Origin: Oopsacas minuta
Taxonomy: Eukaryota; Animalia; Porifera
Direction: 5' to 3'
NCBI GenBank assembly: GCA_024704765.1
Contig: JAKMXF010000299.1
Location: forward strand, 816,556 to 880,555
Length of the DNA: 64,000 nt
The position numbers and the translations under genes were made by a program. Of this stretch, positions 1 through 58,576 are shown one piece after another (position 1 is the first letter of the stretch; the number at the start of each line of letters is the position of its first letter). Under the pieces are notes generated by a model. The model did not search any database. It was not told where the DNA came from and worked only from the letters and a program-made list of their open reading frames with translations.

Positions 1-53
1 ATTGGTTAAATTATAGTAGTTTTTCTATATGCCAGAACTTATTGGCCACCCTG
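1..53. mobile_element. Terminal fragment (TIR) of a Tc1/mariner-superfamily element running off the window start, inserted into the 3' end of RAG1-like copy 1
   Basis: The reverse complement of 32-55 reads TA-CAGGGTGGCCAATAAGTTCTGG, close to the TIR CAGGGTGTCTAATAAGTTCTG at 16111 and 62407. It supplies the last residues (QGGQ*) of ORF 39..335. Confidence 0.75.
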
Positions 54-55
54 TA

Positions 56-2166
56 TACTATTATATAATATTTCTTGGAGGCTACTTGCAACGTCTCTTT
101 TCTTCTTTGCGTGCTTCAAACGATTCTGTACTAAGATGGGGTCACTACAACATAACAACCTGACTAAAATATCTCTAACATTATCTGTGAAAGAATTTTT
201 TCTTGCAAGATTCTCCCGATACCACCTTACAAATTTATTGCAGGATTCTAAACATTCCTCAGAGAGATTCTGTAATCCCTTACAATTATTGTAAGCACCT
301 ATTAACTGAAACGAATGGGCAAGTAACTTGTGCAAGGATGGAGTGATGCTTGCTCATGGGTACTCAACTAGAATAAATTCGTACGTTTCTTTGCACAATT
401 CTTGCATTTTGTCACAGTTAATCGAGTCACCACTGTTGACGAGTCTTAACAAAACAGATAGATTTGTCTGGATCTTCTCTAATGGTATTTTATCTGAAGG
501 ATTGATGGAAGAAGTGGCCCACATCAAAAAGTCTCTCTTATTTAAAAAGCAGTCTCGCGCAATGTTGCCAGTGGTTGAAGTGCCGCCCGGGCTTGAAGGG
601 ATATCGACACTGAAGTTACATCTTTCCTGGAGTATAGCTCGAACCCGTTTCATGGAAGAATTTAGTTTCGAGTTTGATGGCGCCCATACTTTGAGTCCTG
701 CATCAAGAAGGTATATCAACAGCAAGAACCACCTGAATACACAAAGGTAAGCATGCAAAGGAGACGCAGCTATAATATCGATGTTAGAAGTTGGCTGATC
801 ATAATACCAACACGTTGATTTGATGGGAGTTTCAAGTACTCTTCTTCATCGACCTCTTCAAAAAGTTGCCGAGCGTCGCTAATTAATCTGTTAATAGGGA
901 AACCAGAACTGCCCTATTCTAAACTTTTAATTTGGCTATCCGTTGCAGTACACAGATGACAAGAAGCTACACCAGCTCCATCCAGCAATCCTGCCATCTT
1001 GGTATCAAAAAGGGAACGGACTATCACGACCTGGGCATGGCCTCCAATAAGAGATAACCCATCCTGTATGTATGGTCTGTTTGAGGATTGACTATTGTAT
1101 TCATGATAAGCTTTACATTAGAATATTCTTCTTTCAAAGCTATCAGTGCTACTGGCCTAAAGCAGAAAGGAGAGTTGGGTGAGCTGTTATAGAACACGTC
1201 ATTTCCAAATGTGTCTGTAATTGATATTACTTTGAATCCGAACAAAATGAAAGTCTTTGTGCTTAATACAGAATTGTTGCTTTGTTGGTTATAGGTTTGA
1301 TGACAACCGGAGCCATCCAACCCATCAGATATCTTAATTTTTAGTGGGTAGTGTGAATCAAGAACTGGGTCTAATGTTGAAAGCAAGCGTTGAATGGTCA
1401 GACTAAGAATGGAATGATAAGAGACGCAAGTCACAATTGACAATGCTTCGGGGTCTCTGACTATTTCATTTCATTTATTAGGCTTATTTCCCTACGATAT
1501 TGCGAGACAAGCTTATAGGAAGGAATCTTAACATCACCTTTGAGAATTCTTTTCAGATTTGTGTATTAACTAACCCCAATTCCTAAGCTGTCTAATATAT
1601 AAGCACATTTAGAGATTTTACTTAGTTCAATACACCGCTAAAAGATCCGTTATCAATTATTTCTCTGCATATCTCTGAAGTATCACGGTCATAGGATTTA
1701 TTTGAGACTAATTCTAAAGCTAGAGCGAGTAGTTGTTAAGGCTCAATCTTTTCTCTCTCTACTAAAAGTCCACATGCTCTAAAAGAACACCAAGTCTTGA
1801 TCTGGAAGTCTTGATGTGACATTCGAGAATATGCTTCCGGGATTCAGTTACAATCTGTTCTGAAAAGTTTCGATTTTCAGAATCAGTGACTAAAGAAGAA
1901 AATTCAGGATCGAGCGATATTCTCTTTCTCGGATTGGATATTGTTAGATGAGTAGAGTGGAAAATCATGTTATCCCATGTTTCAAGATCCTTCTTGCGGT
2001 AAGCCTCTCTGGATGTTAGAAGTGAATTAAATTTGAAATGGGGAGTAGCAGTTTCTTCATCGGATAAATGGTTGTTCTCAATAAGTTTTCTAATAGAGAC
2101 TGTAACACTTCTTCCATTCGAAATATACAAACTATATGCCTCATTGTTCGTGATTGATACAGACAT
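56..2166 (-). pseudogene. RAG1-like/Transib transposase pseudogene (copy 1; frameshifts and nonsense codons)
   Basis: ORF fragments 1762-2175, 1024-1443, about 760-1020 (read manually), 354-758 and 39-335 carry, in order: SRKHILECHIKTSRSRL, ISDGLDGSG, SPNSPFCFRP, SLFDTKM..CHLC, LHAYLCVFRWF, GGTSTTGNIAR, LHKLLAH and LSEECLESCNK. All are collinear with the intact copy at 55027-57271. A TGG>TGA change lies at 354-356. Confidence 0.92.
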
Positions 2167-2838
2167 GATCCGCAAAAGGGCTACTTTAACATAGAAACAT
2201 TATGATATATGGTTGTAGAGTATTGGAATAACTAATAACCAGCAAAATATAGAATTTTACTGAAAAATTTAAAACGTATGAAAAAAATATTTTTCGGATT
2301 TTTGTCAGGTGCGGACAATGAATGACGTGATAAATTTTCGTCAGCTTTTGGCAAGCCTGGAAAGTGATTAAATAGTTGACTAAATATAGTAACATTACGT
2401 ATATATTAATAACGTTTTGTCAAATTTTGTCAAACAAGGGAGGCTACACTTCTATCAATGAGAAAAAATTCCAAATTATAACTTTGGGGGGGCCAAACTA
2501 GACACCCGGAGAAAAGTACAAATGAATATCTAGACTAACCTATCAATGACTAAATTGTTGTTACAATATAGATTTATAATCAGAAGATGTTTTTCACTCT
2601 TATATTTAGTATTTACATCAAATATATTTACATACAATAGTGCATAGGAATTTGCGGTTTGAAAATATATATATCTAGTATTAGAAACACAAAACAAAGT
2701 TGTGCGTAGTTAGGATTCCTAACTGCTTCTAATGCTGGCAATGATATTTTCTTACTAATTGAACTATGGAGAATTCGAAAAAATGCATTGAGATATGTTT
2801 TTTAAAATATGCCTATTTCCCCATATTGCCACACTGTG
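56..2838 (-). mobile_element. RAG1-like transposon copy 1 (left end intact, right end disrupted or off-window)
   Basis: CACTGTG at 2832-2838 reads on the minus strand as CACAGTG-TGGCAATATGGGGA-AATAGG, 672 bp upstream of the ATG at 2166. Confidence 0.8.
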
Positions 2839-28799: not shown

Positions 28800-30171
28800 C
28801 ACTGCTAGTTGTAAAGTGTTTCAGCTCCACCGCCTCCATCTGATATGATTAACGCACAAATATTGTCATTATCGTTATTTTGATAATTATTTCACCATTG
28901 TTCAATGTAATTCAGCTACAGATTGTATAAGCTTGCTAATAGTACAATAGAGGCTACCTTTCTTCTTTTAGCATATTCCATAGTTGTAATCTTTTGTATT
29001 AATGTTTCCGTGAGAATTTTCCATGATCAAGTTTGATGTAGCTAGTTTTTGAAATGAAAAGGATGGTAAATTTGAAATCTACCCATATTAATGACGCAAA
29101 AAGTGTATATTTTGTTATGAATCACTTTGATAACTTTTTCCAAGTGAGAATGTACATAAGTTTCATATTGGATCCACAGTGATATATTTGGAAAATACTT
29201 GAACATCAGGAATAGATTCTATAGAAAGAACCCCCAAACTAGAATAATCTCAATAAGTTTTTAGAAGGATGCCTCTCCTTTAATGCAATAGAATGGAATA
29301 CCAATTTTCCCAGGTATCTAGATCATTCCTTTTTCGAGAGTTTTCCCTAGATTTATTGACTGCATTGACTATGTGACGAAGTATTTGGCTGTCTTATTCC
29401 AAAAGATGGCAATTTTCGATTAGAACAGTGATAGATAGAGTGATACCTATTGTTGGCCACAAAAGTATCATTGGTTTCCTTGTTTATAATATATTCACTC
29501 ATTTGTGAAATTGTAGACTTTAATATAAATTCTAATCATTTTTATGGAACCAATATCAATACACATTATTATAAACAATTATTAATTCCAAAATAGAAAG
29601 CTATTTGGCCAATGGCTTTTTTGTACAAAAGGGGCCAAAACATGTTTTGTCTGATTTCTTTGACTCCGAATATTATTTGCCATGAAAATATATCTGGACG
29701 CCTTTGGGCGGGTCTAGAAATTATTGAAAAGAATCTTATATTCATGAACAATACAAAAATGGCGAATATTAAACTTGCAATTGTTTGCAATATAAGATCG
29801 GCGACTATAAACTTTGGGTACTTTTGAGGAATTTATCTATAAGTAGACCAACAAAGATATTCATAAAATTATATTTGGAGTTTGATCGTGGTTAAAAATA
29901 GTTCAAATTAATTATGCATTGTATGCCAATACAGATATATGATTATATAGTTCACATTAATGTGACTCGTATTCAGAAGTAGCAGCATCTTTGAGCAAAA
30001 GATATTTATGGTTTTTCAGGTATGGGATTTACTATATTATGCATACTTTTTATGCATTTTATTGGCATGTAATAATTCTAGCTTAGTAATTGTGTAGAAT
30101 CGAATACAAGCATTAAATTTGATAAATATCAATGTCATATTTTCACCTATTCCGCATGGTTCCACACTGTG
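28800..30171 (-). mobile_element. RAG1-like transposon copy 3: left end plus decayed 5' part of the transposase
   Basis: CACTGTG at 30165-30171 reads on the minus strand as CACAGTG-N13-AATAGGTGAAAATATGAC. The leader is homologous to 48610-49110. An ATG at 29502 is followed (with frameshifts) by VNIINKETNDTFVANNR and RKRNDLDTWEN, matching copy 1 VSITNNEAYSLYISNGR and RKKDLETWDN. The lower boundary is uncertain. Confidence 0.72.
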
Positions 30172-48609: not shown

Positions 48610-49542
48610 CACAGTGTGGAAAAGTGCAATAATAGGTGAAAATTTGACTTCACTATTTACAAAAATTTATGTATGCATTCGATTTACACTATTTCAAACC
48701 TAGAAATATACTATTATTAGTCACTTAATGAACTTATAACATGTCTTACCAAAGTTTCAAAGTTAGGCAGAAATTTGAGATTTGAAAACCTGAAAACCAC
48801 AAATATTTATTCTTCAAATACTCTTGCGATATTTCAGCATTCCAGGATATTTAGTAGTTCAATGGCGTTTATCAGTATTCGTATGCATTTTATGATTAAT
48901 TTTAACTCGTTTGCAAAACAAATTAAATATTTATTTTTTCATTCTTAAACATTTTTAGTCGTCTATCTCTATCCATATTTCAGCTCATTGACCTACCTTT
49001 AGGTCCCCGATCTTACAATGCAAACAATTGCGATTTTGAATAGTTAACAATTTCGTATAGTATATCTTTCTAAATCTCATTTTCAATAATTTCTAGACCC
49101 GCCCAAATCCGCCCACTTATACTTTTCTTGACATTAAGTGCATGGGGACGCCCATTCGGATGAAATGTATTTTTAGGAAAATTTTAATTTTAATTGTAAC
49201 ATTTTATAATTACTGTATTTCTAATTACTTAGTATCATTTTATGGAGTATCCAATGTATAAATGAATTCAGTATACGCATTGTTATTCATGTTTATCAAT
49301 AAATAGGGCTGGTTGGTATAAAACACTCATAAATTTAGAACTCATTTACTCTTGAACCATAATTAATAATTATAGCAAAATACTACAGATTACGTCATAG
49401 TCCCATTTCCAGAAGTGAAAATAATATTCTGGTGCCACTTTTGAAATCTACAGTGTCGATTTACCAAATATGACAACATTTTAACATATATCTTCAGTGT
49501 AAATACCAATTACCCCCAAATCGCCATTTTTGCCACACTGTG
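48610..49542 (+). mobile_element. Non-autonomous RAG1-like/Transib-family element (933 bp)
   Basis: Starts CACAGTGTGG and ends CCACACTGTG, with 5-bp TSD TATAA (48605-48609, 49543-49547). The first about 500 bp are homologous to the left end of copy 3, including an identical TTTCAATAATTTCTAGACCCGCCCAAA. No long ORF. Confidence 0.9.
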
Positions 49543-52222: not shown

Positions 52223-53405
52223 CGAGGGGCACTCAATAAGTTTTGAGCCTGACTATGTTGCGAGCTCATATATAAGTAAACCATTACTTCTTTCGATAAA
52301 TATGGGATAAATATACCTCGCTGAAAATCTTGTAACTTTATCTTGTATACTTTTCAGATAGCAGTAGTTTGTTATCTATGGACCCCTTAGTTACCAAATC
52401 CTCAATACAGTTATCAAGGCGTGATTCGTACTAATACTTTTCAGTTCCAACTTTTGAAAACAATAAAAGAATGTCACGAAAATTTCTGCAGAGCCTTTCC
52501 AATCACAAGGCATCTGCGACAACAGCGACAAGATGGTACAGAGAATTTAAGTCTGGGAATTTTCATCGTTGAAGACCAACCCCGCCCTGGACCACCCCAT
52601 ACGCTGTTACAGAGGGAATTGTTGATTCAATTGAGGACTTTGTGATAGCAGACCAAAATGTTATATATGAGAGGATTCAGCACGAAATTGGCATTTCATC
52701 TGGGGCAGTGCACACCTTTTTACACCAATCCCTTCAGCTATGTAAACTTTGTGCTCGATGGATCCCATATCAGCTTCATCCTGAGCAGAAGCAGAATCGA
52801 GTGAAATGGTGCCATGAAAGGCTTAAAAAATTGAAAAATGGCAACAGTAGAGATGTTTCCAAGATAATAACTGATGATGAAACATGGATCTATCACTATG
52901 ATCCAGAAACAAAGCAGCAGAGCTGTCCATGGTGTGAAATTGGAGAAGGTCCCCCAACACAAGTTCGCAAAACTCAGTACACCAAGAAACAAATGCATGC
53001 AATGTTTTGTAATACAATGGGTGTAAAACTGTTGTACCTCTTGAACCTGGTAAGACAATTAATTCAACCTGGTATACAGAGAGTTGTTTGCCTCTAGTCA
53101 TAAAGACAATAAATTTACAGCGTCCTGGCACAGGATTAAGGGGAACTTTTTTGCACCACAATAATGCCAGATCTCATACATCAAAAATGGTAAGACAATT
53201 CATTGAAGAATCAAGACCACATATATTGCCACACCCCCTTATTCTCCAGATCCAGCACCCTGCGACATCTGGCTCTTTCCTAGAATAAAAATACCTTAAA
53301 GGCAGAAATTTTTCATCGAATTCTGAACTTGAGTGGCCCTTAGAGAAGTGATCGGAGACATCAACGAAAATGAATTTAAAGAAACTATTCAAGCTTGGTT
53401 TAAAC
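52223..53405 (+). mobile_element. mariner transposon, decayed, 3' end interrupted by a hAT insertion
   Basis: TA-CGAGGGGCACTCAATAAG 5' end. ORFs 52642-53097 and 53088-53288 carry WIPYQL, ITDDETWIYHYDPETKQQS and HHNNARSHTS, with a PYSPD remnant. Homology stops at QAWFK (53405). Confidence 0.88.
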
Positions 53406-54355
53406 CAGTGGTTCCCAACGGGGTGAGCCGTTGGATGAAGATGAGCCATTGGATGAAGATTTATTCTAACATTTGTAAATTTGCAAAATACTATTGTATC
53501 ATTAATATGTTGTGCACTTCACCCATAATGACAATTCTAACACGTTCCCCACAAGAAGAGCTAAGTATTCACCATTTACAACCAATCAATGCTTTCAATT
53601 GTATTGTTTCTTTGTTTTGAATTAACAGTTCAGACGGCTTCTTAACAAAGAAGTTACAAAAAGTGATCATACCATGTTATTTCATTAATTACCTCAATAG
53701 TAGACACGATTTTTCTTGCATATCCAACCATGGCTGAAAACCCCAAGAAGAAATCCCGTCAATACTCCATAAATTATCTGAAATTTGGTTTCATCGCTTC
53801 ACCTACTAATCAACGATTACCCTTTTGTTTACTCTGCAATCAAGTGTTCTCTAATGAGGGCATGAAACCTTCACGTATGTGCGGCCATTTGACGAAGAAA
53901 CACCCTGATAAGAAAGACAAGGATCTCAAATATTTCCAGACTTTAATCAAGCAGTTTGCAAATCGTAGTTCCATAGATGGAATGATTAACAAAATTACTA
54001 CTAAAAATGACGATGGTTTTGTTGTTTCTTACAATATATTTCTTTTAATCGCCAAATGTGGAAAGCCTCATACAACAGGTGAAAAGCTCATCCTTCCAGC
54101 TATAAGAGAGGTTATATCTACTGTCATGCATCAAGATGCGTCTAGTGTTGTTAGATCAATTCCCTTAAGTAACAACTCAGTTTTGAGGAGGATCGAAGAA
54201 TTGGCTATAGATGTTGAACAACAGTTGTGTAAAGTTTTACAAACGACGGAACTCGCTTTGCAGCTTGATGAGTCAACCTTACGTGACAATGAAACCTTAC
54301 TTATGGCATATGTACGATACATTCACAATGGTGTATCAAAAGAAGAAATGCTCTT
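53406..54355 (+). mobile_element. Buster/Charlie-type (SCAND3/ZBED5-like) hAT, 5' part
   Basis: TIR CAGTGGTTCCCAAC preceded by GTTTAAAC (NNNTANNN). ORF 53730 reads MAENPKKKSRQYSINYLKFGF..CLLC..MKPSRM..HL..LQLDEST..EEMLF up to the insertion point. Confidence 0.92.
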
Positions 54356-54381
54356 CACAGTGGTTTAGAAGCAAAGAATAG
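54356..54381 (+). promoter_or_regulatory. Left RSS-like end: heptamer CACAGTG, 10-nt spacer, AAAGAATAG
   Basis: Read directly: CACAGTG GTTTAGAAGC AAAGAATAG. Confidence 0.85.
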
Positions 54382-55026
54382 ACAAAAAATTGATTCCGTA
54401 TTTGATGGTTTCTTTTCATTTTATATTGTTTAAATGATTCTCATTTAAAATATCTAAGCGATTGAGACTCTAGAAGCTGTAAAATTTCTTCATCAAAGAT
54501 GCGAAATATTTATAGGAAAATTGCGGCTTCATGATTTCCAAATTTAGCCACAATTTCAAATGAACCTGTAAGAGTAATTACATAATCGAATGTTACTAAT
54601 CTGGTATACTTTATATATTTCGACTATGCTAATTCTAAATATCTTGTTTCCATGCCGTATCTTGTATATATTTCGTGAACATAAGATTTCTAAAATCTAG
54701 TAAAATCCATACAGAATTTTTACAAAGAGGAATACTTAAAGTGTCAGGAAAAATAAACAACACAAAACAACAGCGCAAAATGAATCGGATACACGCATTA
54801 CGATTCCTAAAAACGTAATCTAAAACCACAAAACCCGAAACAGTGCGCAACCTATAATTTTCAATGATATTCCATTACAACTTTTCGTTGCTAGGAATTC
54901 CCATTGTAGCATACTCCAACAATGGAATGAAATAGTATTGTATTTCGTTCTTGAAATTTATCATAGCGACTTATATATATAATCTACTGAATAATACAAC
55001 ATGTTTTTCGGAATTTCTTGAAAACA

Positions 55027-56456
55027 ATGACAGAAGAGTTAACTTTCCCAAAGGCCCGCCTCGAATTGGCAAGAATCCTGAAAGACAATAATAATTGTAT
55101 CTTGAAAACGACAAAATATTTCAAAGAACACTTTGAAATAGACTCTGATAATACAAAACTCTTGGAAACGTTGCTGTTAAGAATTCGGAACAGAGTCAAG
55201 AAGGCGAAGAGATCTTTAGATTGCTTAGAAGGAAAATGGTGGCATTCTAGCATTTCCATGAAACCTGAGTTAAAGAAAAATCATGTTTCTGATTTACTAG
55301 AGTCGTCTTCTGATGATGGTGAAGTTCCCATTCATTCAGTGAGTCATAGGAAGCATCTTGATGATCTCTCTCTGCAACAACAGCGTACTCGATTGTCAAG
55401 TCTGCTAGAATGCATTAAGTCACTCTCAGTTATTGAGAATACTACAGAAATAAGCATTACAGCACTCTCATTACAACTATTGGCAAATGAGGAGAATAAT
55501 CGTCAGGTTGCTACGGTAGCCAGAGAGATTATTGTCAGTGGAGGATTCTGTAACCTCAGTAACAAGCATGTTCCAGTTGATAAAGCCTTATTCCTGCTGG
55601 ATTTACTTGAAGTGGGCAGACGAAAATACACTCAACTACGTCAAACACTTCTACCAGACGATATACATTTCCCATCTTACAGCAAGCTAGCTAATCTGAG
55701 AGATGTCATGATTTCGCGATCCAGTATAACTTCATATCCTAATCCAGCTAAACCAATAGGTATACACGCACCATATTGTCTTCAAGTTCAGAAAACCCTG
55801 GAAAGAATATTATCAATGGTAGATCGCCCCACAAGTGAAGAATTCCCACTCACATTTAAAATCGCAGATGGCTTAGATGGTTCTGGTTGTCACACTATCT
55901 ACAACCAGCAGACAACTAATACTTTCACCAAAAACTTCATTCTGTTTTGTTTCAAGCCCATCTCCATCCACACTGTAACAAACAGGATTGTTTGGCAGAA
56001 TAAATCCCCTAATTCACCCTTCTCTCAAAGACCTATTTTTCTCTGCGCTGCGACAGAATGCGAAGAAAATATTCGTTCCTTCATGGAGACTATGATTAAT
56101 CCCGATACAGCGATGTTGCAAAATGGGATTCCTTTAGAAAATGGTGTTGTCAATGTCGATATTATCCGCTCAATGTTTGATGGGAAGATGGCAGCCATTC
56201 TCTCTGGAGCTGGAGGAGCCAGTTGTCAGATGTGCACTGCCACACATAAAGATTTGAAGGACCGGAATTTAGTTCTTGAAGGGTTCCCCATCAACAGAAA
56301 TATCACAGATGCAATCGAGTTATTTTCGCACATTGATGACATTGAGTCGTTCTTTGCTCTTTCGACTAATGAACGCTTCAATTTAACTCATCAACCAATT
56401 TCAGAGATTAACATACATCCGGCATCTCCACTTCATTCATACACAGGCGTATTTAG
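55027..56456 (+). CDS. RAG1-like transposase, exon 1 (NBD-like segment; RNase H fold with the first two catalytic Asp; CxxC)
   Basis: The ATG at 55027 lies in an AAAACAATG context. Motifs: RKHLDDLSLQQQRTRL (from 55348), ADGLDGSG (D at 55876, RAG1 D600-like), PNSPFSQRP, SMFDGKM (D at 56179, D708-like), CQMC and PLHS. No internal stops. Confidence 0.92.
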
Positions 56457-56520
56457 GCAAGTAATCTAGTACTCCATTAACCATTCAGAATTTGTCTTCA
56501 CATAATTAAACCAATTTTAG
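56457..56520 (+). other. 64-nt GC-AG spliceosomal intron (predicted)
   Basis: AG|GCAAGT donor and TTTTAG|G acceptor. Splicing gives GVFRWFNLL, matching the uninterrupted CVFRWFLLL of copy 1, and joins both ORFs in frame (726 aa). Confidence 0.85.
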
Positions 56521-57271
56521 GTGGTTCAATTTGCTGGTATATCATCTTCGCCTCGAAAAGTTTACCTGGTCCCCAACTTCACCAGTCATCAAGGAGTCAA
56601 TGAAATTCCTTCAAACATTTATTCAGGAGAAGACAGGATTAAAGGTTGACCAGCCTAATTCTAGCGGTGGAACCACCTCAACAGGGAATGTTGCTAGAAG
56701 AGCCTTTTCTGATGAAACTGAATACCTTGAATGCATTCTATCAACTGTAGCAATACAATATCGCCCAATCTTATCAAAGATACATACTCAGCTTTCAGCC
56801 ATTCTTCGGGTTTTCAATTCAAGTCACAAGGTTAACACTTTGGAATTGGGGAAGTGGTGCAAGGATACCTACCTTGTCATCTTAGATTCTTTCCCCTGGG
56901 CTAGCATGACTCCAACCCTGCACAAGCTCTTGGCCCATTCCGAGGAGTTAATACATGAGTCGAATTCTAGCTATGGCTTAAAGGCATTTTCAGAAGAAGG
57001 CACAGAATCATGCAACAGATTAGTTAGAAAATATCGGGAGAATTTAGCTCGTAAAGTTAGTTTTGAGACCAATATTATGGATATCTTCATCAGATTAACT
57101 TCTCAAAGTGATCCAACCTTAGTAAACTATCGAAGAATTTTGACTTGTGAACGATGTGGTCAATCTGGACACACAACGAGATCTAAATGCTGCAATGCTA
57201 TGAACAGTCAGAAAACTAGTGTACAGACTTTATTCACGACTTTAACCTCCAATACAGATTACCTATCATGA
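56521..57271 (+). CDS. RAG1-like transposase, exon 2 (HxxxxH zinc ligands, catalytic Glu, C-terminal Cys/His motif)
   Basis: Motifs: GLKVDQP..GGTTSTGNVARRAF, TPTLHKLLAH, FSEEGTESCNR (E at 57005, E962-like), SDP and CERCGQSGHTTRSKCC. Confidence 0.92.
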
Positions 57272-57610
57272 ACTTAAGAATGAATATAATGTATATTTTG
57301 TAAATCAATAAGATAAATTCCATCATAAGTGTGACGTCATAACTCTATAAATACAAGCGCTACAACAAAATTTTAAGTTCAAGGTGATTGCCAAATACGG
57401 ATAACCCATATGTAATCAATAGATTTCATGGCGATAAAGTCGAGTAAAATGTATTTATTGAAGAAAATTTAAAATTTCACATATATCAATGACGTCATAA
57501 CTTGGAAATTTTAGGCCATATACTTGTTATGACAAGCTGTATTGGTTCCTTATATATAATAATCTATATGTAAATAATACATTTCATATGGCTATCTCAC
57601 ACCAAAATAG

Positions 57611-57645
57611 CTATTCTTTACTAACTGCCCTATTAAATCACTGTG
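57611..57645 (-). promoter_or_regulatory. Right RSS-like end: heptamer CACAGTG, 19-nt spacer, AAAGAATAG
   Basis: The reverse complement reads CACAGTG ATTTAATAGGGCAGTTAGT AAAGAATAG. Confidence 0.85.
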
Positions 57646-58325
57646 CTCTTCTCCAAGCCACTAGAAACAGATACTAAAGCTGAGACAATTTTATGGTGGT
57701 AAAGCAATTTTGTGAAGAGAAGAACATACCAATGGGAAATATTATTGCGTGTGCTACTGATGGAGCACCTTCAATGATTGGACGTCATCGTGGTTCATAG
57801 CTCATCTGGAACGAGCTGTGCCGAAGTTTTCCTATTCATTGTGTCATACATCGTCAAGATTTGATCGCCAAGCACCTAACACCTAATCTTCACCAGTCTT
57901 TGCAAATCATGATTACTGCTACTAACAAAATCAAAATAACTCACTGAATGATCGCATCTTTCAGCAACTTTATGAAAACAATGATGAAGATTACAAACGC
58001 CTCCTTCTCCATACTGAAGTTAGGTGGCTTTCTAAAGGTAATTATTTGAAACGATTCCATCAACTGTTTGATTCTATAGTCGAGTTCCTAGAAGAATACG
58101 ATTCAACTCTTGGCAGAAAAGATTAAAATGATAAGGACTGATGTGGCTTACTTAGCTGACATATTCGAGAAACTGAATATAGTGAATAAGCAGCTACAAG
58201 GGAATAATACTACTCTTATTCAAGCGAAGGGCGTTGTTCTATCATTCTTAAGTAAACTAACCTTGTTCCGACAGAATATTGCGCGTCGTGAATTTGGGCA
58301 GTTACCTTGTTTAAGTGAACACACA
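57646..58325 (+). pseudogene. Continuation of the interrupted Buster-type hAT transposase (frameshifted, 3'-truncated)
   Basis: Reads SKPLETDTK, ACATDGAPSMIGRH, IHCVIHRQ, LLHTEVRWLSKG and LFRQNIARREF. No right TIR or second GTTTAAAC was found. Confidence 0.88.
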
Positions 58326-58576
58326 TAGGAAGTTGACAATTAGTGGTGAAAGGGCAAAGCCATAGCGCAAATAATCGACGGAATATTGTCGACATTCTTT
58401 TTGTCAGAAGTAGCCATTTAGTTATTTTGCAATATGATATAGTTGGTGATTTATTAAATTTGAGATATACAGAAATTTCTAATATTCCTCCAATCCTATA
58501 TATACTAATTCGAATAGTATCAACATCGTGTGGAGTTTTATTTGATTTTTATGACACTAATGATGCATTTATCATA

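Follow-up and report, generated by a model that had tools for sequence, protein, structure and literature searches.

Transib elements were defined by Kapitonov and Jurka (2005; PMC1131882) as single-gene transposons of 3-4 kb with a ~700-residue transposase resembling the RAG1 core, CACA(A/G)TG ends and target-site duplications (TSDs) of 5 bp. It is accepted that the RAG1 recombinase is related to this superfamily or descends from it. The only Transib characterised both biochemically and structurally, HzTransib of Helicoverpa zea (PDB 6pqn/6pqx), comes from a subgroup in which the RAG1-like ZnC2 segment and the CTT* knuckle have been lost. Asymmetric ends, a CTT*-type knuckle and the ZnC2 segment have been described for the Subgroup I Transibs, among them those of Mnemiopsis, Pleurobrachia and Hydra (Transib-9) (Tao et al. 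2022, PMC9435367). The window analysed here is a stretch of 64,000 nucleotides from the glass sponge Oopsacas minuta (assembly GCA_024704765.1, contig JAKMXF010000299.1, positions 816,556 to 880,555 of the forward strand). At window positions 54356-57645 it carries a 3290-bp element that has every defining feature of the Transib superfamily. We are highly confident that this is an autonomous, structurally intact Transib copy of O. minuta, or of a very close relative, inserted into an older hAT element.

An initial annotation of the window had described this locus as an intact single-gene, RAG1-like transposon with heptamer ends, a 5-bp TSD and no RAG2-like partner, and all of these features were read in the sequence; the transposon is of the cut-and-paste kind. 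The interpretation is right in substance; what it describes is the Transib superfamily, known since 2005, and not a new kind of element. The implied novelty was not sustained: the features are those by which the superfamily is defined (PMC1131882), and the additional RAG1-like features have been published for Subgroup I (PMC9435367). The annotation had made novelty depend on the protein lying outside described Transib clades, and the element falls at least within the described superfamily.

The boundaries were read directly. The element starts with CACAGTG, ends with CACTGTG and is flanked by CTCTT on the left (54351-54355) and on the right (57646-57650), a single copy of which is kept in an insertion-free form. 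Of the first 12 bases of the two ends 11 match, and further agreement requires a 9-bp offset. The CACA(A/G)TG-heptamer terminal inverted repeats (TIRs) and the 5-bp TSD of the superfamily are both present. The boundaries are fixed by three independent lines of evidence, namely a sister copy, insertion-free copies of the hAT element, and related elements with 5-bp TSDs of their own.

The sister copy (L001), from the same O. minuta assembly, matches the element at 97.0% identity over its full length, the match starting at the first base and stopping at the end. Its flanks differ from those in the window and it has its own TSD, AAGAC. This copy is defective: a 1-bp deletion breaks the open reading frame (ORF), and the 3′ end is short by its final 2 bp. 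Contigs from four public runs of one sample were mapped onto the window stretch. One form joins position 54348 to 57644 and omits 3295 bp, corresponding to the element plus one CTCTT; as the contig with this form is ~5% different from the hAT flank of the window, it was assigned to a paralogous hAT copy. Many distinct loose flanks begin exactly at 54355/54356 and 57645/57646, one of which is the flank of L001. Four related elements were found around full-length relatives, one in O. minuta (L006) and three in three other assemblies (L002, L003, L005); all have CACAGTG ends and perfect 5-bp TSDs (TAAAG, AACTA, CTTCG and TAGAG). With the AAGAC of L001 and the TATAA of a non-autonomous element in the window, described below, 5-bp TSDs were seen in six related elements. 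On the short metagenomic contigs L007-L009 no TIRs could be recognised.

The only long ORFs inside the element lie at 55018-56469 and 56531-57271 on the same strand. Removal of 64 bp at 56457-56520 (AG/GCAAGT ... TTTTAG/G) gives a 726-residue ORF from the ATG at 55027, open throughout, as had been claimed for the spliced frame. The spliced protein aligned without gaps through the exon junction to 17 intronless full-length relatives. The predicted intron, on the forward strand, is of the GC-AG type in the window copy rather than GT-AG, the donor being GT in L001 and in all public-run contigs; on this point the initial picture of the gene had to be amended. Introns of the GC-AG type with an AG/GCAAGT donor are normally spliced. 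Exon 1 (55027-56456, forward strand; residues 1-476 plus 2 nt) contains, from the N-terminus, a helical domain, a region resembling the nonamer-binding domain (NBD) of RAG1, the DDBD and pre-RNase H regions, the RNase H domain with D284 (55876-55878) and D385 (56179-56181), and ZnC2 with C400/C403 followed by a RAG1L-type segment. Exon 2 (56521-57271, forward strand; stop codon at 57269-57271) contains ZnH2 with H611/H616, then E639 (57005-57007), the C-terminal domain and a CCHC knuckle, CERCGQSGHTTRSKC (57146-57190). Non-coding DNA inside the ends amounts to 671 bp before the ORF and 374 bp after it. Besides the two transposase pieces no ORF of at least 100 residues was found between the ends, and none that is RAG2-like, in agreement with the earlier statement that there is no room for a RAG2-like gene.

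An intact ORF, an intron and conserved residues would also suit a domesticated RAG1-type host gene that is not a mobile element. The gene is enclosed by TIRs and a TSD and sits inside another transposon, many copies have different flanks, and paralogous sites are free of the insertion; given these observations we consider domestication wholly improbable.

The catalytic and zinc-binding motifs named in the initial annotation were located at D284 in DGLDG, D385 in FDGK, E639 in GTES, C400/C403 in CQMC and H611/H616 in HKLLAH. In alignments with HzTransib, the amphioxus protein BbRAG1L and RAG1, D284, D385 and E639 correspond to the RAG1 triad D600/D708/E962, and C400/C403 and H611/H616 to the zinc ligands, so that the equivalents claimed earlier are present at every position. 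In single-sequence searches with the exon products the best match was the Helicoverpa zea Transib transposase (E 2e-7 and 2e-13), followed by amphioxus RAG1L and then RAG1. A profile was built from the 17 full-length relatives. Against solved structures it matched HzTransib with E 2e-46 (161 bits), BbRAG1L with 4e-18 (68 bits) and RAG1 with ~3e-17 (65 bits), and it also matched the isolated RAG1 nonamer-binding domain (3gna) with E 0.006. Of the 101 positions invariant in the 17 relatives, 99 are kept by the window protein. Pfam matches of the window protein to RAG1 and to zinc-knuckle families were sub-threshold only; in UniRef several O. minuta copies are already annotated with a RAG1 domain.

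An AlphaFold model was examined for P0003, a relative of 724 residues that is 60% identical to the window protein (pLDDT 89.9, pTM 0.77). The model gave a TM-score of 0.81 to HzTransib (by target) and of ~0.67-0.75 to RAG1 and BbRAG1L, and with RAG1 chains that include the NBD the match spanned ~650 columns. Judged by the sequence comparisons, the sponge clade has a homologue of the RAG1 nonamer-binding domain; 'sponge clade' is used here as shorthand for the O. minuta proteins together with proteins from ENA assemblies. Residues 1-75 of the P0003 model form a confident three-helix N-terminal domain, which is followed by a disordered linker and then by the NBD-like region. The three-helix domain corresponds to residues ~1-75 of the window protein (window 55027-55251) and is conserved in all 17 relatives.

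The two ends of the element are asymmetric and each consists of two parts. At the 5′ end a 13-bp terminal box, CACAGTGGTTTAG (54356-54368, forward strand; heptamer 54356-54362), is conserved in L001, L002, L003 and L005. It is followed after 4 bp by the second box AAAGAATAG (54373-54381, forward strand; positions 18-26 from the end). At the 3′ end the terminal box CACAGTGATTTAA (57633-57645, reverse strand; heptamer 57639-57645) is separated by 13 bp from the same 9-mer, AAAGAATAG (57611-57619, reverse strand; positions 27-35 from the end), which therefore lies 9 bp farther in than at the 5′ end. Five of the six elements compared share this layout: a 13-bp terminal box, a spacer (4 bp at the 5′ end, 13 bp at the 3′ end) and then a second box with the consensus RGGAATAGG. 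When second-box offsets were scored across the elements, an offset of +9 bp reached a summed score of 47, against 18-36 at all others; it ranked first in five of the six, and none of 2000 shuffles reached this score. The spacing is conserved across five sponge families, and the end geometry is retained between sponge families that share only ~40% protein identity. The shorter spacer is at the 5′ end, as it is in Transib families whose ends resemble RSS12 and RSS23. The 13 + 4/13 + ~10 layout is identical to that published for AanRAGL, the RAGL transposon of the pelagophyte Aureococcus.

A mechanism was derived by homology with HzTransib and RAG. The DDE transposase is ordered, from the N-terminus, as helical domain, NBD homologue, DDBD, pre-RNase H, RNase H, ZnC2, ZnH2, a C-terminal domain with E639, and the CCHC knuckle. 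A dimer would pair one 5′ end (4-bp spacer) with one 3′ end (13-bp spacer) and nick beside the CAC of each heptamer, with hairpins forming on the flanking DNA. The excised element would then integrate with a 5-bp stagger, and a RAG2-like partner would be unnecessary.

The features of the element were then compared with those of Subgroup I. The ends are two-part and asymmetric, as in that subgroup. The ZnC2 segment, of the RAG1 alpha11-alpha12 type that is lost in the HzTransib-type Subgroup II, is retained, the comparison being at the level of the segment. The CTT1/CTT* motif, Cx2Cx3GHx4C, was counted as present; the window protein (CERCGQSGHTTRSKC) has x5 at the last interval, and the exact motif occurs in P0011, P0016 and many non-sponge relatives. 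The knuckle has been lost in some sponge sub-lineages, including that of P0079 of O. minuta. On these features the sponge clade would group with the Subgroup I Transibs or beside them; of the RAG2-less lineages, this is the one that most resembles RAG1L. A further proposal makes the clade a genuine member of Subgroup I or its sister group, with natural activity either in this copy or in a sister almost identical to it. We put this forward tentatively and give it rather less than an even chance.

The window copy has an intact ORF, two intact ends and an intact TSD, a sister copy is 97% identical, and about half of the public-run contig pieces match the window element at 99% identity or more. 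Since sister copies are ~3% diverged, the family was mobile fairly recently. The recent activity claimed in the initial annotation holds for the family; activity of the element at present is a prediction. Several observations weigh against the main reading of the element. The window copy is ~60 positions away from the high-depth family consensus, which means that younger copies exist and that this one may be inactive. Its predicted splice donor is GC, where the sister copies have GT. No transcript, spliced joint or transposition event was seen in the public runs found, which are apparently DNA. The knuckle, Cx2Cx3GHx5C, is one residue longer than the canonical Cx2Cx3GHx4C, and the placement in Subgroup I rests on features and not on a tree with named references.

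The same observations could be explained if the element were a structurally intact but immobile relic of a family that has stopped moving, the window copy merely looking functional. The nearest copy, L001, is 3% diverged and broken, and the GC donor, the ~60 private differences from the high-depth contigs and the missing RNA evidence would all fit such a relic. A relic accords less well with 726 open codons, with the retention of 99 of the 101 invariant positions and of all catalytic residues and zinc ligands, and with two perfect ends and a perfect TSD. The contig pieces with 99% identity or more to the window element also speak against it, as does the normal splicing of GC-AG introns of this kind. 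We regard the relic as rather unlikely, while keeping it as the most serious of the rival explanations.

This is a large family, 4895 representatives (clustered at 50% identity) having reached E<=0.001 against the profile. In a quick maximum-likelihood tree the relatives that the window protein had retrieved formed one fully supported clade of 18, with the window protein in a five-member sub-clade. Thirty representative hits among the nearest non-sponge relatives were traced to metagenome contigs of ENA, Logan and TARA. Among the ENA and Logan contigs, the P0252 cluster (31 members, 1174 residues) has an N-terminal extension of ~367 residues and the exact CTT* motif. No prokaryote relatives were found in GTDB species genomes in a low-sensitivity scan with two peptide patterns. 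Two 'bacterial' Transibs, CthTransib_0091 and CthTransib_0066, which are given in the supplement of Tao et al. 2022, served to root the RAG/Transib tree (PMC9435367). Their contigs are AT-rich, 3-4.5 kb long and of 0.19-5.4x coverage, belong to the SUP05 metagenome bins SPONL and CRYPa, and carry genes modelled with AUGUSTUS introns (PMC9435367). These contigs might be eukaryotic host DNA binned with the symbiont.

No paper that combines Transib or RAG1 with sponges was found in the literature searched, and sponges are not mentioned in Tao et al. 2022 or in those of its supplements that were examined (PMC9435367). The O. minuta genome paper counts Transibs only within a pooled RepeatMasker class, 'Other (Mirage, P-element, Transib)', of 1552 elements and 1.22% of the genome. 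With the present element, Porifera join the documented hosts of such elements.

The host of the insertion is a transposase ORF of the FAM200/ZBED5/GTF2IRD2 type of hAT, which is cut by the element into a left part (53730-54355, forward strand) and a right part (57651-58330, forward strand). The right part is in frame for 14 codons (SKPLETDTKAETIL) and then runs into WW and a stop. Later homology in the right part (CATDGAPSM, LLLHTEVRWLS) lies in other frames, with stops. When the flanks were joined without the element the frame continued across the junction (..EEMLFSKPLETDTKAETIL..), with a stop 16 codons on. The initial annotation had stated that removal of the element restores the hAT frame exactly. 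This is correct only locally: the frame reads ...EEMLFSKPLETDTKAETILWW and then a stop, and the host hAT is itself in decay, frameshifts and stops following farther on.

Several DNA transposons are nested in this region. Mariner-type transposase motifs were found in ORF fragments at 52642-53288, just upstream of the hAT element. A partial second Transib of another family (P0079/L006 type) occupies window positions 1-2838 on the reverse strand; its 5′ end, CACAGTGTGGCAATATGGGGAAATAGG, lies at 2838, its transposase is ~47% identical to that of the focal element, and it extends past the start of the window. A 933-bp non-autonomous Transib with the TSD TATAA was located at 48610-49542. Its ends are like those of the L006-type family and have the same short and long spacing of the second box. 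CACAGTG ends with GAATAG-type second boxes also occur at 29175 and 30171, 997 bp apart. They were rejected as a single element for lack of a matching TSD and may be solo or rearranged ends. The focal element has a CRE-like motif, TGACGTCATAAC, at two places in its 3′ non-coding part (57333-57345 and 57492-57504), and a similar sequence, ACGTCATA, lies near 49393 in the 933-bp element. Beside the sister copy, at 1600-3546 of L001 (reverse strand), a 525-residue gene combines a cysteine-protease-like motif (ISDCGVF) with a PHD finger and adjoins a KDZ-type region; it is probably part of another mobile element. It was considered as a RAG2-like gene and rejected, being protease-like, free of kelch repeats and outside the ends.

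Among known systems HzTransib is the best relative both by sequence (E 2e-46) and by structure (TM 0.81), although the window protein is just 21-24% identical to it. Compared with HzTransib the sponge protein has ~180 extra N-terminal residues, including the NBD homologue, and a CCHC knuckle, and it lacks the HzTransib-type tail. The segment from CxxC to LH comprises 66 residues in P0003 and ~26 in HzTransib, i.e. ~40 more in P0003. At positions 406-455 the profile aligns unbroken to BbRAG1L (GFPINRT versus GsYKITRT), whereas HzTransib has a gap of ~35 residues. Four short helices were modelled at residues 416-453 of P0003, inside the ZnC2 segment. Compared by eye, the ctenophore Subgroup I element MleTransib_3931 has a CxxC-to-LH segment of 69 residues with a matching M-S-R-T and the same C-terminal pattern (PMC9435367).

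The RAGL transposons (ProtoRAG of amphioxus and AanRAGL of Aureococcus) and vertebrate RAG1 have the same fold, catalytic and zinc-binding residues, NBD, 5-bp TSD and heptamer as the sponge element, and the sponge protein is just 16-17% identical to their proteins. Its NBD homologue, the segment of ~65 residues that follows CxxC, and the Cx2Cx3GH knuckle are common to RAG1L and absent from HzTransib, as they would be if the gene were not a Transib but a RAG1L gene that had recently lost its RAG2L partner. Such an origin is very improbable. HzTransib, at 161 bits, is by far the closer match in sequence, BbRAG1L scoring 68 and RAG1 65, and the same set of features has been published for the RAG2-less Subgroup I Transibs (PMC9435367). 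No RAG2-like gene with kelch and PHD domains was found inside the TIRs of this and five related elements or next to them, and no Pfam match was obtained to the N-terminal non-core region of RAG1 (RING/ZDD, zinc fingers).

The element is best read as a Transib, and with the Subgroup I Transibs it shares asymmetric two-part ends, the ZnC2 segment, the Cx2Cx3GH knuckle and a single gene. The two differ in host, the Subgroup I elements of PMC9435367 coming from other phyla and the present one from Porifera. An intact, young, RAG2-less element with both the ZnC2 segment and the knuckle, an NBD homologue and asymmetric ends would offer a practical substrate for two questions, the origin of a 12/23-type pairing rule and the origin of RAG2 dependence. 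If the sponge clade is indeed a member or sister of Subgroup I and naturally active, a rule pairing one short with one long end, the forerunner of 12/23, would have existed in a RAG2-less transposase of one of the earliest animal branches. That transposase would also have had an NBD able to read the second box, and a test with a single protein would be possible. Beside HzTransib, Subgroup I and the RAGL transposons, what the sponge element adds is a candidate active Subgroup-I-type Transib from an early-branching animal, which could serve as a natural model for the origin of the RAG rules.

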